Assembly: GCA_020536535.1 (NCBI GenBank)
Contig: JAHLWZ010000127.1
Coordinates: 1-64,000, forward strand
Direction: 5' to 3'
Length of the DNA: 64,000 bases
Origin: Pelomyxa schiedti
Taxonomy: Eukaryota > Protista > Evosea
Part shown: one piece after another, positions 25,159 through 32,564 of the stretch
How positions within the stretch are numbered: position 1 is the stretch's first letter
Layout of the letters: each line of letters starts with the position of its first letter
Made by a program: the position numbers and the translations under genes
The notes under the pieces: model-generated
Seen by the model: only the letters and a program-made list of their open reading frames with translations
The model's database searches: none
Told to the model about the DNA's origin: nothing

Positions 25159-28100
25159 CTACTCCACCCAGACATGGAGGTTATGCTCTTGCAGTGTTGC
25201 CTGTAGGGCTGGCACTGCACCAGGGGGAAGCTTCGATCCTGTGGGCATTACCCAAGTCCTTTTGCTTGCACCATCAAATGATGAGAGGCGGGGGTACTTG
25301 GAGGCACCAAGAGAGTGGAACGGCAGTATTCGGACGTGCTTGACACCTGCTGCAGAAATGGTGGTGGCCAGTAATTCCATCTCATCGAGGGAAGTATTGA
25401 ACCCTGGAATCAATGGTATGGATACCACAAATCTTTCTGGGCCTACTGCAGATACGGCGTGAGGGAGGTTTGAGAGTATTGTCTAATGAAGGGGCAAGGT
25501 GAGTTTGGATTATGTCATGATTGATATCAAACCTTGTTGGATATGCCAGTGAATTGTTTGTGTGTTGCTTCAGTGACGCACTTGACATCAAAGTACACAA
25601 AGTCTAGTAGAGAAAATATCTCCGATACCTTGTTGTGTGGTTGGTTTCATCAAAGTGGTATGGGAGTGCATTTACTTTTCCCCACTCCACACAACCGCTA
25701 GTCTCCATTCCAACAGAAATCCCCCTCGACTTCAAACCCCGCACAACATCCAGTACAAAGCCTTTGTTGTGGAGAAATCAGTGGAAAAAAAGACTTCGTA
25801 TAGAAGTCAAAAACCTGCTTGCATGAGTGGCTCGCCACCACTCAAAGTGACCCCTCCATTCACCCCATAGAATTCATGTCTTTCCTCAGCCAACTGAATA
25901 ATCTGTACTGCGTGAGTCTTTTGACAGAGAGGTGCAATAATACCTCCATGGCTTTGATCGGTTTGCCAACTGTAGTGGCGGCGTCTGTTGGCACCGCCGG
26001 CACCATCTCTTCCACGTCAGGAAGTTGACCTTCCGGGTTGCAACACCACTTACAACGAAGGGGACACCCTTTCAGGAAAACTGTTGTGCGATTACCTGGA
26101 CCGTCTTGAACTGTATAGTCCTCAATGTTGAATATTGTGCCAGTGGAAGAGGGACTGAATATTGAGGCCTGTGCATGACTCTGGAGATGGTCAAAAAAAA
26201 AAAAAAAATTACATGAAAAAAACCTTTGGAGGCGGGAGTAGAAACACGTCACCTTGTGGAAAAGCTGTTACCTTTCTCTCTGGGATTGTTGCTGTAACGT
26301 CACTGAGGTTGTGTTCAGTTCTTTGGATGACTTCATCTTGTATTGATCTGGAACCAGGGTAATTTACCTAAAAAATGACTTGGACTTATACCGAGCAAGT
26401 TCAACAAAAAAGGCAGAAAAGCCAGCAACGCGAACTATCAAGTGGCGATAACTTGGTCGAAGATTAGTGAGTCTTATTTTTAAAAATAAGATACATACTT
26501 CTCTGGATGTAGCTGAGCCTCCCTGCACCTCTGATTAGTCTTTCATGTGAAGAGAGAAAGAAAAACTTTAGAACCTGAGCAGCTTGGAATCTACAACATT
26601 GAACTGAAGCTGGAATCCATTTCGCTGAAAGTATGTCCTTATGAGATCAAGCAACTTACGCGACCCTTGTGGCCCACTCAAGGCTGATGGATGGAATTTC
26701 ATGTTATGAAGTCCACCTCTTGTGTTGGTTGTTGGTTTTGTTTTAAGAACCCAAGCAATGATAAGGAATAAAACCTTATTTGCGTATGGTCTACTTTTGC
26801 AGCAGAGAGCAACACAGCATATGGCCCTAGACTATGTTAGTCCTCTACATTTTAGTGCCAATTATCAACCACAGGCATCCGTTCCAGGCGCTGGGCTGGT
26901 AACCCCATCACATAGGATATCACCAGATTTGCGCCCATCGGGTGTTGCAAGGCAAGCTTTCCCAAATGGTGCATGTGTACTAATGGCTGAGAGACGGTGA
27001 GGTAGAAAGAGTTATGGAACCCATATTACCAAGCATAGACGGGTCATAACGCTCCCCAAGAAAGTTTACCCCTTGAGAGACAATACTGCAATAGGCCGAA
27101 AAGAGCTCAGTAAAAAGACTATCGACACTGTTGTTATTATTACCCCACTTTGGAGCTCTTTTGCACTCTAGAGGTGATAAGGTTTTCATCATTGAGGTAT
27201 GCACATACCCTCGAGTAAGTCTTCATACCCCTTCCAGTTTGCCATCAAAGCATTTCTAAGTGTTTCCATCGAATCAAGCTGCTTATTTATTAGATTCCAG
27301 GTAACCATAGTTATTCTCAACCTTGGAACCAAGCAGGAATTTGATTGCGGCAAGGGAGTTCACAACGTTGACCATACCAGATGACAAAGTAGTTGGAGTT
27401 CCATTCCAAAGTGCACCACCATCATCAAGGGATAACCCTGTGTGAAGATTATCCTTTGTTATGAAGAGATCACAGGGTTGTACCGCGCCCAATACAATCT
27501 CTAGTCAATACAGAACAAAATACTAAATTGCAAGTTTGCCTATGTGCTGCCATTACGTAGTTCCAATACTTTTGCCAGTTCCCAATTGCTGTCAATAATG
27601 AGCACGAAATTGGCACCAGACATTTGGGCAGGCACCATCTGTCATATGTTTAACATAAGCTGCCATAAGTTCCTCCAAAGTCCGCGGTACCGGGGTCTGA
27701 GTAAATTCGATTCCTTTTTTTTTCCGCATCCTTCAGAGAAAAAGAACGCGGGTGGTAATGTACCTGTACGTGGGTCCTTTCCACCATATAGAGCAAGTTC
27801 AAACAATTTCATGTGATTAACGAACCCTGGCTGTACAATGCCGTAACTCATTCCCCCAAGGGTTGGTTCGGTGCATCCCCCTATGTTCAATTAGGGGGAG
27901 AGGAAAAGGTGCCTTGCCGCTTACCCATGGAGGCATATTTTCGGATCACTTGAAGGGGTTGCTTACTTCTTTCCAATTCGTGTTGTATGTATACCTTGCC
28001 AAGAAGTGAGTTGTCAATAATAGAAATACGGTTCTACAGGCAGGTTGAAGAATGCAGGAAAGCCTACGCCAGTTTTCACACACTCAACAGCTTTCATTAA

Positions 28101-29919
28101 GAACCTATGTTGTAGTTGAGGTGTATACCTATGAAAAAGTTAGGAGAAGATAGAGATTAGCAGAGTCCGCACCACAAGGACAGCGTTGGCTGAGTTGTTC
28201 TACAGTTTATTGCCGATTGAATCACCAGCATGGAGAGTTCACTGTCCGCTGGGCTAAAGCAGCAGAAAATTAATGATAGTGGAGTACAATAAAAAGTATT
28301 GGGAACCTTCCATCCTCGTCGACACCACCAAGCATCATATTCTGGAATAAATTTCCACTTCCTAGACCCTCCCAAGAAAATGAGGCAACATATTCTACCA
28401 TTGTCATCTTCATTCGCAGTGCCTCAAGTAATTCCAGTGCACATTCTTCGGTCAATGAGCCGCTCTCCCACTCGGGCATGAAGTAGGGATACATATCTGT
28501 GGGACACCACAATTAGCTATTGTCACTATCTTTGGGTAGTAAAATACAATAATCAAAACGCCCAGGACTATATCCGAGGTGTGCACCCTCCAAGTGACCA
28601 GCCAAGTACACGAACCAGAATGACTGGACTGAGAGGATATTACAAGAAAGGGAAAAAAAAAACGGAAAGAAAGTACCAGCTTCGTGGAAATTACGAGGCG
28701 GATTTGCCGGAACCCAAGAACACCTTTCAGCAATGGCTGTTAGCATTTCTGCCAATCTGGGATCCTCGGTTACGGAGGCCAATCGTTGTGCTTCGCGTTG
28801 GTAATTGGATACCCATGAGAGAACTCCTCTTAGAACTCGTATTCCTGCCCGCCAGAAATAGACCTAATAAATTAAGAAATGTTGTTTAAACTGGTGATAG
28901 TACCTGCTCCATACTTCTGCAGCCAGTTGGTATGAAATTCTGTGACGCACTTAAGGCAGAGAAGGAATAACGGTAAAAAGTACTGCGATTTTGTCTTCCA
29001 TCTCAGCAATAATTGCATTGAAGCCTTTTCTTAAAGCCGTCTCGTAGTCAAGAACAAATCTACCCTCTGGTGCGGGGTCATGAGCTGCGGTGTAGAGTAC
29101 AGCTTTCCATCCATTAGTTATATACGCCGCTTTCTGGTGAAAGATGGAAAAAAGATAAAAGAGTAAGCAGTCGATATGGGAAAATAAGGGGACACACAGG
29201 GAAACACGTCATCCAAATTTTGTCCCCCAAGCTTTGCATGCATTTGTCTGAAAAGTATTGGGCAGTCTCCTTCAAGGCATCCACATCTTTCACAGGGAGC
29301 AAGAATTTCTTTCCAAACATGACGTACTGCGAGGAGGAGGAGAGGTCTTTGCTGATTTGTATGCCACCACCGCTTCCCACCTCTGTAACTTCATCTTGAC
29401 TTTCTGCCACAACTTGTAGGGAACCCAGCTCCCTACCGTCGTAAATTACAACTCAATGCGCACGAAATAGAACCTTAAAATATAGCTCGAAGCGTAGTTG
29501 CAATAAGGTACAGCACCACGTGGGTAGCGTGTTTTCTGCCCCACAATCGGCTCCCCTGTAGAGGGTTTTAGAGGGAAAAAAAAAATTCTGAGCCCATTTA
29601 CCCAAATTGATCACTGGAGTGAGATGTTCCATGGCGTAGGCGTGGCATTCCGCTCTGCTTGGGGGTGGTCAGAGAACGAATGAATTAGCATAGCTCCGCA
29701 GAAATTTCTTTACCATTCAATCGGAGACAAGGTCCCACACACAGCCTTGTGTGCGGCCATGTAGTTTGTGATGTACTCCACGTCAACAACCAACGGAGAA
29801 CTGACGTACCTGCCAAACATCTCCCTTATCGCCGCCGTAGATCCAGTAGCGATCTCCTGTGTGCTCACACATCTCGCCTTCCTCCCAGTTCCACGTGTAA
29901 CGTCACTCGTGTCTGCCAT
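25159..29919 (-). CDS. Glycyl-radical enzyme (HPAD/arylacetate decarboxylase clade) fused in frame to its radical-SAM activating enzyme
   Basis: GRE part: [64 protein letters not shown] (Cys 27873-27875), [30 protein letters not shown] (Gly 26421-26423), [11 protein letters not shown]. After a phase-0 intron (26181-26271) it continues into activase [48 protein letters not shown] and IPLIPGFN...[12 protein letters not shown]. Confidence 0.9.
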
Positions 29920-30182: not shown

Positions 30183-32564
30183 CTATCCTCTGGAAATGTG
30201 CCTGCCTGGGAAGTCCAATGGGGACAATAAGCCTATCACAGTGTGTAACAGTGTGGCTGGTAGTGATCCAAGAGTGGAGGTCACCAGTCTATCTTTTTCT
30301 ACCAGTGCAGAAACAGGTGTTTGCTCAGTCCTGGCCAATCGATTCCAGCACAGAATTACGGTTTTGAGAACGACCAGGAACCACTTGGGGAAAAACTGCC
30401 TATCAGCAGGGCTCCATGTGGCTGGACTTGTGAGGTGATGCAGGCATTTTGGCAAAATAAGAAAATCCTGGGGCAGTGTGGCGCCATGACACCAAAGCAA
30501 CTTGACCACTTTGGAATTGCCTGCAGACAGAGCCTCTATTAGTGTGTCCTTGTCAAATTGTGCCCCAAATTCAAGAAGAAGGGATATGGCCTGGAAGGAG
30601 TCAGTGGTTCTGACAAAGTACTTCAGCAATGGTAAGGAAACTGGGAGGTTTGGGTCAGCACCCATTTCCAGCAGCATTCGGGCACAAGGTAAACTATGTT
30701 GACTTCTACAGCACAGGCCAAGTGGGGTGAAATAGTCTCTTGTATCAAATGACTGAGAGCCTTCATTTAACTGACAGTCAAGGGTCAACCCATGATTGGC
30801 AAGGAGTTCCCCCACAAGAGGCTTGTTTCCAGCTTTAAGAGCATATTGGAACAGCCTGGTTTTATTGTTCACATCCACGGAAATGAAAAAGTCAACCAAA
30901 GAGTTATTGCTCAAATCAGAGAGTTCAATCAACCGATGGTGGATTTCTGAGTGGTTCTGGAGCATTGGAAGCAAGATGGACGTGAGCTCACCCCTCTTAC
31001 TTGAGATCAGTGCAGTGGATATCATAACCGAGATAAGCTCATACAAAGATATATCACTGTCACAAGCTTGTGTTATTGTGTACTCTTGGCCGCCCCTGTT
31101 TTGGTTGACCTTCTTCCATGTGATCGTTTTGGGTGCCTCCTTCCAAGTTTCGTGGTATTTGGCGGAAATAAACTCATAGAAGCTCGCCATTGCAGATGAG
31201 TCAGCCAAAGTGAATGAGGATAACTTGAGGAGGGATCCAAGCAAATATAAAATATGAATACTGTGTGGTGCACCAAAAAGAAATCTTAGGGCTTGGTGGA
31301 AGAGTTCGTCCAAGGGGGAATGGTTCAAAATCTTGTTGAAGGGAAATGGAAAAAAAGCGCGGGATAGAATCTGAAATGTGGGGCTTTCAAAGTTGGAGAA
31401 AAACCCAAGAGCCTTCAAAAGCAGATTTTCAGGGATACTGGTATTTGTAAGGCTCAGAGGTATAAGTACCAATGCGGCGCAACCAGGATGCTGGGTATCT
31501 CTGAGGCCAAATTCTACCAACTTATCTTTTGTAGAACCATCCACAATACAGAAATCTGTGAGAACACTCAAAAAGATTTTAAATAGCTCGTGGTCCATCT
31601 TAGAGAACTCGGGAAGTCTTGGTAGTAATGATTCCACCAGTCTTGCAGTGAGACTGAGGGCAACTGTGCCCTTGCCCTCTAGGGTAGACCAGAACTTAAC
31701 GGTTTGTAGGATGTATAAATTTGAAGTCCCAATGAGATTCACGACCCAGTCCGTAGCTGTTGCGGTTAGTAGCGGCAGTTCCGCACTTGTTTGCATAATG
31801 GTGGTACACAGCCCTACGCATGGGACATAGTATTCTGAACACATAGGAAGTAGCCTCTGTACAATCTCGGTGAGAGCCGTTTCGTACGGGACTAGGAATT
31901 TCCGGAAGTTTGAAAACCACAGCATGGCCCAGAAGGAGGTAAGTTGTGGTCCCCTGAAAATTGCTCCAGATGCAGAAAGGATATGAATATCAGTCACCCA
32001 GGTGTCACAAATCACCTTCCTCCACGAATCGGGAAAGTTCCTTGTGAATATATCAGGCATAAAATCATCAGCCATAAGTAGAATCGTAGGAGTCAAGTCA
32101 ATAGAGAGAGCACCCAGCAGCTCAGTATCAAAATACCCACGCTCTGACAACTGAAGCACAAATTCCAACACGAACCTGGTAGCTGAAGTACCTGAATAAG
32201 ACAGGACAGCATCACGTGCCAGCAAAGCCAATTTCCTGGAATCATCCCCCTTTCTGCTATTAGTGCCTCCAGTCTTATTTACAATTATCCACTTTTCCAC
32301 ATCCACAACAATTCTCTCTCCATTGCTGATTCCACAATCATCATCAGGAGCAGAACAACAACAAATACTACTGGGACTCAGTTTTTCAAGTGCATGAAGA
32401 TAATTGGTCATAGTTTCGGTATAAATTGACCTCAGAAGGGCCGGGAGTGCCCGCATTGTGGGATGAGCGCGCCCCACAGCATCCAGAGCCTCGAATGCAG
32501 TTGGACATTTGATTTGGTCAAGGGCTCGTAAAAGTGTTCTTCTATGAGCAGGCTCCATCTCCAA
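30183..32564 (-). CDS. Intronless 793-aa protein with helical N-terminal region, ankyrin repeats and a C-terminal F-box/SOCS-like motif
   Basis: Single uninterrupted ORF. Ankyrin-like LFQYALKAGNKPLVGELLANHG, FTPLGLCC...CARMLLEMGADPN and TLIEALSAGNSKVVKLLWCHGA. C-terminus TWSPADRQFFPKWF...LGSLPATLLHTVIGLL. Confidence 0.8.
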   Translation of the reverse strand: MEMEPAHRRTLLRALDQIKCPTAFEALDAVGRAHPTMRALPALLRSIYTETMTNYLHALEKLSPSSICCCSAPDDDCGISNGERIVVDVEKWIIVNKTGGTNSRKGDDSRKLALLARDAVLSYSGTSATRFVLEFVLQLSERGYFDTELLGALSIDLTPTILLMADDFMPDIFTRNFPDSWRKVICDTWVTDIHILSASGAIFRGPQLTSFWAMLWFSNFRKFLVPYETALTEIVQRLLPMCSEYYVPCVGLCTTIMQTSAELPLLTATATDWVVNLIGTSNLYILQTVKFWSTLEGKGTVALSLTARLVESLLPRLPEFSKMDHELFKIFLSVLTDFCIVDGSTKDKLVEFGLRDTQHPGCAALVLIPLSLTNTSIPENLLLKALGFFSNFESPTFQILSRAFFPFPFNKILNHSPLDELFHQALRFLFGAPHSIHILYLLGSLLKLSSFTLADSSAMASFYEFISAKYHETWKEAPKTITWKKVNQNRGGQEYTITQACDSDISLYELISVMISTALISSKRGELTSILLPMLQNHSEIHHRLIELSDLSNNSLVDFFISVDVNNKTRLFQYALKAGNKPLVGELLANHGLTLDCQLNEGSQSFDTRDYFTPLGLCCRSQHSLPCARMLLEMGADPNLPVSLPLLKYFVRTTDSFQAISLLLEFGAQFDKDTLIEALSAGNSKVVKLLWCHGATLPQDFLILPKCLHHLTSPATWSPADRQFFPKWFLVVLKTVILCWNRLARTEQTPVSALVEKDRLVTSTLGSLPATLLHTVIGLLSPLDFPGRHISRG

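Follow-up and report, generated by a model that had tools for sequence, protein, structure and literature searches.

The characterised decarboxylases among the glycyl radical enzymes (GRE), namely IAD, HPAD (PDB entry 2Y8N), AAD (7E7L) and PAD, have separate radical-SAM activases (AE), and activases work catalytically in characterised GRE systems. A fused arrangement was reportedly described by Nyvltova and colleagues in 2017 (Environ Microbiol 19:1091, a paper cited in PMC8136499 and PMC7762791) for Mastigamoeba balamuthi, in which HPAD and its activating enzyme form one fusion protein and production of p-cresol is said to have been shown. The 64,000-nt stretch of Pelomyxa schiedti DNA analysed here (positions 1 to 64,000 of contig JAHLWZ010000127.1, hereafter the window) carries on its minus strand, between 29919 and 25159, a gene for a GRE followed by an AE. 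Its product has the Gly and Cys loops in common with the characterised decarboxylases but differs from them in being fused to its activase. This is very probably a nuclear P. schiedti gene, derived from a laterally acquired bacterial operon for an arylacetate-decarboxylase GRE and its activase, which is now a single intron-split open reading frame (ORF) encoding one GRE-AE protein.

The reported M. balamuthi fusion resembles that of Pelomyxa in that both occur in anaerobic, free-living archamoebae and place a GRE and then a radical-SAM AE in one ORF, and in that an operon gained by lateral transfer is the origin proposed for each. The two differ in setting, the M. balamuthi genome having 60.7% GC and 3.4 introns per gene, whereas the Pelomyxa gene, with its 28 introns, sits in a window of 45% GC; M. 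balamuthi is ruled out as the source of the window by its GC content and intron density. M. balamuthi is moreover said to be a p-cresol producer. The M. balamuthi fusion sequence was not identified among the matches obtained here.

The fused architecture is already established in anaerobic protists, and the gene in question has been deposited as a fused model. The words 'fusion' and 'fused' are absent from a 2026 review of GREs (PMC13450708), neither Pelomyxa paper discusses the fused gene, and the words p-cresol and HPAD are absent from the Preaxostyla genomics paper. An initial interpretation of the window, made without database searches (the sequence-only reading), had recognised GRE and activase in one polypeptide. 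This is borne out by the continuous frame, by domain matches on the exons and by the fused GenBank model. The same reading had regarded the architecture as rare, a view that does not survive the finding of about ten other fused homologues and of this gene already fused in GenBank.

Gene structure and the junction between the halves

Translation of the minus strand yields short open segments in all three frames, which represent consecutive pieces of a GRE and then pieces of an AE. Homology-guided spliced alignment joined these into 29 exons separated by 28 introns, all GT-AG, with a start ATG at 29919 and a stop codon at 25161-25159. The GRE and AE of a bacterial operon (L002) served as guide in a custom spliced alignment, and the AE part of the model was adjusted by hand against the stand-alone activases P0002, P0117 and P0014. 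The frame from 29919 to 25159 is uninterrupted with either of two donors at the junction between the halves, the product being 1147 aa with a 43-nt junction intron and 1131 aa with a 91-nt one. The other 27 introns are 40-64 nt in length (median 46). Introns, without that at the junction, have a GC content of 38% compared with 47% for exons, and the surrounding window lies at 43-49%. The features of the gene, all on the minus strand, are as follows.

25159-29919, minus strand: whole fused coding region, from spliced alignment against L002; equal to GenBank KAH3766596.1 (P0214) except in two places
26305-29919, minus strand: GRE half, residues 1-844, ending ...RTEHNL; Pfam PF02901 and PF01228, NCBIfam matches, 59-66% identity to bacterial GREs
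27864-27925, minus strand: catalytic Cys loop GGCTEP, split by the intron 27924-27881; found as a motif and aligned to IGGCTEP of the bacterial guide
26415-26432, minus strand: glycyl radical loop RVAGFS, with Gly as residue 820 of the 1147-aa model; motif and Pfam Gly_radical
26224-26304, minus strand: linker part 1, with 11 residues (26304-26272) in both models and 16 more (26271-26224) only with the 43-nt intron
26181-26223, minus strand: junction intron, predicted, in its likelier 43-nt phase-0 version; intron length, donor statistics and GenBank model
26145-26180, minus strand: linker part 2, 12 residues before the first conserved AE residues; alignment with P0002, P0117 and other fusions
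25162-26144, minus strand: activase half of some 264 aa; matched by GRE-activase models including NCBIfam TIGR02494 and aligned to bacterial activases of 256-258 aa
26180-25944, 25902-25815, 25761-25676, 25628-25533 and 25482-25162, minus strand: the five AE exons
26043-26066, minus strand: radical-SAM motif CPLRCKWC (CX3CX2C); Pfam Fer4_12 and Radical_SAM
26030-26095, minus strand: 66-nt segment, read here as coding but treated as an intron in the GenBank model; 22 residues including CX3CX2C

The closest bacterial GRE ends ...RTLHEI followed by a stop codon. The window reads ...RTEHNL and continues for 11 further residues, as the sequence-only reading had observed in noting that the frame runs on beyond the bacterial stop. 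Two phase-0 donors, at 26271 and 26223, can be paired with one acceptor, at 26181, and with each of them the reading frame into ...CPLRCKWC is preserved. With the donor at 26271 the intron measures 91 nt and the linker 27 residues; with that at 26223 the intron measures 43 nt and the linker, longer by 16 residues, 43 residues. Donor scores are 8.1 bits for the 43-nt version and 6.9 bits for the 91-nt version, both inside the range of the gene's other donors. The 43-nt intron is probably the one used, because the 91-nt version is longer than every one of the gene's other 27 introns; the GenBank model of the gene also takes the 43-nt junction intron. The phase-0 intron from 26271 to 26181 that had been proposed earlier is therefore present as to its GT and AG ends, its phase and its 91-nt interval, but use of its donor is not favoured, that site probably being 48 nt too far upstream. 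The choice between the two donors is without effect on the predicted fusion.

In the AE frame a stop codon stands at 26270-26268, 88 nt upstream of the AE exon, and the earliest in-frame ATG, at 26006, comes after the CX3CX2C motif (26066-26043). Since no ATG in this frame precedes the cluster motif, the AE would be unable to start translation alone, in agreement with what had been noted before. Without splicing at the junction, the GRE frame would meet a stop codon at 26211-26209, 31 codons past the bacterial end point. In a single-cell RNA run from the P. schiedti genome study (X1), 0.37 of the sampled words from a 5-kb stretch were present, the ceiling for fully spliced mRNA being about 0.52. 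This share, which says nothing on the junction, fits an expressed and largely spliced gene.

The published P. schiedti genome was obtained by single-cell genomics and transcriptomics and has 7.43 introns per gene, with Augustus models improved by PASA and EVM; the window agrees with this description. A gene of bacterial type that was acquired and carries 28 spliceosomal introns, approximately 8 per kb of coding sequence, stands well above this mean. Two of its exons are tiny, at 24 nt (26522-26499) and 36 nt (28939-28904). A model built by chaining exons for the longest ORF (1217 aa) was dropped on account of too many exons, and the homology-guided spliced alignment was used instead. Artefacts of the guided alignment, comprising a 7-nt linker exon, the boundary of AE exon 2 and an intron at 25271-25215 in the last exon, were ruled out by comparison with P0002, P0117, P0014 and P0214.

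Fused homologues and the origin of the fusion

At least ten other fused GRE-AE homologues were found, distributed across Archamoebae, Fornicata and Preaxostyla. They include the product of a fused Trinity transcript of the archamoeba Rhizomastix libera (EP01107_P018612, P0394; 1103 aa), Hexamita inflata CAL6084537.1 (P0215) with three paralogues (fused, 1096 aa), Paratrimastix pyriformis KAJ4461432.1 (P0220; 1169 aa), which is named 'HPAD-activating enzyme fusion protein', and a partial fusion from Kipferlia bialata (P0396). Further fusions are P0216, P0217, P0221, P0229 and P0395, three of which are uninterrupted ORFs on their own contigs (L004-L007); uninterrupted fused ORFs on genomic or transcript contigs are likewise present in Hexamita, Paratrimastix and Kipferlia. 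The window protein belongs to this protist family in having N-terminal PFL-like and Gly_radical domains and a C-terminal radical-SAM AE in one ORF, its splicing being predicted.

All share with Pelomyxa the order of GRE then AE, a Gly loop approximately 75-95 residues before CX3CX2C, and 51-66% identity to the window protein. Their linkers are acidic in most cases, whereas that of Pelomyxa is rich in Pro, Ser, Thr and Ala. A ferredoxin-like insert in the AE is kept in Paratrimastix and P0221 but is absent from six fusions with a short AE, including Pelomyxa. Several fused homologues are intronless ORFs, in contrast to the 28 introns of the Pelomyxa gene. One of these, a 1159-aa fused ORF (L004:339-3818; GCA_003202625.1, QFZN01004875.1), lies beside a PX-domain gene and has an AE with a degenerate ferredoxin insert; it forms the deepest branch of the fused clade.

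When the first AE exon was used as a query against protein representatives, the best 150 matches were all stand-alone or fragmentary activases, with neither a fusion nor a self-match among them, and a region-restricted search for long AE-domain proteins gave three new proteins only. A 1043-aa protein from the European Nucleotide Archive (ENA; P0397) is fused in the reverse order, with an N-terminal activase (CX3CX2C at residue 27), a Gly loop at residue 1015 and ferredoxin-type domains. On a bacterial-looking contig of 208 kb (L008:4103-7245) a GRE is split into several ORFs, of which the C-terminal piece reads through into an activase without a change of frame (P0271, 414 aa). The arrangement is either a bacterial GRE-AE fusion or the result of indel errors in a long-read assembly.

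In a maximum likelihood tree of GRE halves, 11 eukaryotic sequences, of which ten are fusions and one (P0218) is a transcript for a GRE alone, group in a single clade supported at 91/85, rising to 99/97 for the ten that remain without P0221. Pelomyxa and Rhizomastix pair together (86/82). The eukaryotic clade lies inside a group supported at 96/96, the rest of which consists of bacterial GREs, including that of L002, with unresolved internal relations. The AE tree included eight fusions, with P0395 and P0396 left out; these eight halves fall, along with two bacterial activases (P0002 and P0117), in a single clade (97) whose internal pairings mirror those of the GRE tree. Because the two trees are congruent, both halves share one history, which points to a single operon transfer and a single fusion event, not to several independent fusions. 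Separate phylogenies of this kind had been proposed as a check in the sequence-only reading: the congruent eukaryotic grouping was obtained, but the M. balamuthi fusion, whose inclusion was also envisaged, had not been identified. Derivation from a bacterial GRE-activase operon is upheld, both halves grouping with bacterial relatives. As to whether this would be a second archamoebal case or an independent one, the pairing with R. libera favours the former, and independent invention is not supported.

The nearest bacterial relatives in the tree are GREs such as that of the L002 operon and that of Anoxybacter fermentans (P0152), with 59-66% GRE identity to Pelomyxa. The operon (L002:637-10789) encodes, in order, a Trp/Tyr permease, an 837-aa GRE (P0151), a 258-aa AE (P0117), PTA, acetate kinase, an amino-acid dehydrogenase and an indolepyruvate-type oxidoreductase. 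Between them, these genes would cover every step by which an aromatic amino acid is turned into a methyl-arene. No gene for an HPAD small subunit (HpdC) was found between GRE and AE or elsewhere in this operon, no search for one being made in the rest of the Pelomyxa genome. The AE of L002 is short and, like that of Pelomyxa, lacks the ferredoxin insert. The operon differs from the Pelomyxa locus in having two overlapping genes, without linker or introns, within an aromatic amino-acid fermentation operon, whereas the Pelomyxa gene is fused and has both a linker and introns.

The GRE stop and AE start of L002 overlap by 11 nt in different frames, and a one-base frameshift at such an overlap would therefore merge the two genes. 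The linkers of 20-50 residues in the protists presumably represent a later addition or remodelling. In a eukaryote, fusion would keep the second cistron translatable.

One product or two

A forced 1:1 stoichiometry of the two activities, as had been supposed from the fusion, is doubtful because relatives show GRE-only forms (P0211 and L009). Two Trinity isoforms of one gene are present in R. libera (EukProt EP01107): P0211, of 826 aa, terminates exactly at the linker (...DTQ followed by a stop), and P0394, of 1103 aa, is the fused product. The pair is compatible with retention of a junction intron. A transcript-like contig (L009:38-2618) contains a GRE only and falls in the eukaryotic fused clade as sister to Rhizomastix. 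Its GRE stops at the bacterial position (...RTEFTLN followed by a stop) and an AT-rich 3' untranslated region (UTR) follows, with no activase.

These forms bear on an alternative in which the Pelomyxa gene would give rise to two products by alternative splicing: a GRE alone when the junction intron is retained and the fused protein when it is removed, with the AE activating surplus GRE in trans and thereby avoiding a fixed 1:1 ratio. Retention in Pelomyxa would expose the stop at 26211-26209, and in Rhizomastix a retained phase-2 intron starting GTAA would yield exactly the stop of the 826-aa isoform. The GRE-only transcript with its 3' UTR (L009) belongs to the same clade, and family knowledge of activases as catalytic in characterised systems is also in keeping with such an arrangement. 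For Pelomyxa, however, the proposal is drawn from features of the sequence; the Rhizomastix isoforms may be alleles, paralogues or assembly variants, and L009, which ends at the bacterial stop, resembles a separate unfused gene rather than a case of intron retention. Two products are thus regarded as possible though rather unlikely. Equally tentative is the suggestion that the junction intron acts as a switch, the efficiency of its splicing setting the ratio of GRE to activase; such a device, itself unlikely, might be common to Rhizomastix.

It is very improbable that the two halves are separate proteins, with the GRE ending in the junction and the activase made from a different transcript, by way of an upstream mini-exon or from a start codon other than AUG. 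The bacterial homologues are indeed separate genes, and without splicing of the junction the GRE would run into an in-frame stop. Against this, the cluster motif is preceded by no ATG in the AE frame, which contains a stop at 26270-26268, the halves lie some 30-90 nt apart with no space for a promoter, and about ten homologues are continuous fused ORFs. The junction itself also offers two in-frame donors with typical scores and one strong acceptor.

Activity and the public record

Pfam matches fall along the exons in the order PF02901 (PFL-like), PF01228 (Gly_radical) and then Fer4_12/Radical_SAM. Membership of the GRE superfamily is indicated by RVAGFS near the C-terminus of the GRE and the GGCTEP Cys loop, together with the PF02901 and PF01228 matches, and the catalytic hallmarks RVAGFS, GGCTEP, DGPGNR, CX3CX2C and GGEP were all found. 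No stop codon interrupts the five AE exons, which retain DGPGxR, CX3CX2C, GGEP and the C-terminal motifs; they encode a short-type AE that lacks the ferredoxin-like two-cluster insert.

For the GRE pieces, NCBIfam models ranked indoleacetate decarboxylase (IAD) first and the HPAD large subunit second, and the last pieces matched GRE-activase models. The IAD equivalog model NF033718 gave the best score of all families at 691.5 bits, below its cut-off of 1100, and the HPAD equivalog NF033715 gave 515.7 bits for a cut-off of 1150. Scores with pyruvate formate-lyase (PFL) models were 94.5 bits for TIGR01255 (cut-off 994) and 334.5 bits for PRK09983 (cut-off 1109). Of solved structures, HPAD 2Y8N matched at 359 bits, as the third-ranked PDB entry behind two that are not decarboxylases, and AAD 7E7L at 305 bits. 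Arylacetate decarboxylation is the most likely activity predicted, because of the family scores and because the related bacterial operon L002 is one for aromatic amino-acid fermentation, whose gene content lends support to such a role by analogy.

The installation of the radical follows known GRE/activase chemistry (PMC13450708; IAD preprint). From knowledge of the family, the AE domain would bind [4Fe-4S] through CPLRCKWC and cleave S-adenosylmethionine, and would then take a hydrogen from the Gly of RVAGFS, either in its own GRE domain or in that of a partner subunit. The resulting glycyl radical would generate a thiyl radical on the cysteine of GGCTEP, which in turn would decarboxylate an arylacetate, with 4-hydroxyphenylacetate, indoleacetate or phenylacetate giving p-cresol, skatole or toluene, respectively. 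The present analysis shows the gene structure, the intact motifs of both halves and their common ancestry with other protist fusions; we infer the catalytic activity of the Pelomyxa protein, its substrate and its mode of activation, in cis or in trans, as we do the donor used at the junction.

In GenBank the same gene is represented, already as one polypeptide, by KAH3766596.1 (P0214; 'formate acetyltransferase [Pelomyxa schiedti]', 1124 aa), a prediction by Augustus, PASA and EVM that drew on transcript data. It is identical to the model with the 43-nt junction intron save for one residue near 27282 and 22 absent residues. The former corresponds to a tandem acceptor within 27279-27321 on the minus strand, with one AG at 27282 and another 3 nt downstream, so that one glutamine separates the present model from that in GenBank. 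The 22 residues, among them CX3CX2C, are lost in KAH3766596.1 through treatment of 26095-26030 as an intron. This segment is regarded as coding, and the GenBank splice as an annotation error, because the acceptor is weak (score 1.9), the GC content is exon-like (50%, compared with 38% in real introns), and the predicted peptide is identical to that of Rhizomastix at 18 of 22 positions and closely matches bacterial activases. With TIGR02494 (PFLE_PFLC; cut-off 174.35 bits), P0214, which lacks the motif, scored 146.8 bits over profile positions 87-266, while the window exon with the motif alone scored 72.1 bits over positions 1-39, without overlap between the two matches, so that the complete protein would be expected to exceed the cut-off; the Rhizomastix orthologue scored 232 bits. 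Judged by the PFL scores, the public name formate acetyltransferase is a generic mislabel. The record thus needs correcting both in its name and in a model that lacks the iron-sulfur motif of the activase.

That the activase half is a decaying remnant with its cluster motif spliced out, an activase encoded elsewhere in the genome acting in its place, would accord with KAH3766596.1 lacking the 22 residues and with a donor for the 66-nt interval in the normal range (6.7), but is barely credible given stop-free AE exons that keep their motifs, the conservation of the segment in Rhizomastix and bacterial activases, and its poor acceptor and exon-like GC.

Several points nevertheless weigh against a single functional GRE-AE protein as the product of this gene. 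Removal of the junction intron is predicted from the sequence; a search of a protein collection with P0214:761-1000 found no near-identical Pelomyxa transcript-derived protein across the junction. The only public model of the gene is without CX3CX2C, which would leave a dead AE domain if the splice were real. The IAD and HPAD scores lie far under their equivalog cut-offs, so that any assignment of substrate is tentative. The GRE-only forms in relatives (P0211, L009) mean that the fused product may not be the sole one.

With the GRE-AE fusion taken as the preferred interpretation, what is new is the placement of Pelomyxa in the fusion family, for which a single origin is indicated, the correction of the public model and the idea of stoichiometry controlled by splicing. 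The results indicate that the fusion arose once beside a bacterial aromatic amino-acid fermentation operon and then spread or persisted in Archamoebae, Fornicata and Preaxostyla, providing a clear example of an operon surviving transfer into a eukaryote. Natural single-chain systems of this kind could suit the study of glycyl radical installation in cis versus in trans. P. schiedti lives with syntrophic bacteria and methanogens, and it may be speculated that release of p-cresol, skatole or toluene by the host could affect this consortium.

Directly upstream of the fused gene and on the same strand, a single open frame of 793 aa occupies 30183-32564 (minus strand), a gap of 263 nt separating it from the start codon at 29919.

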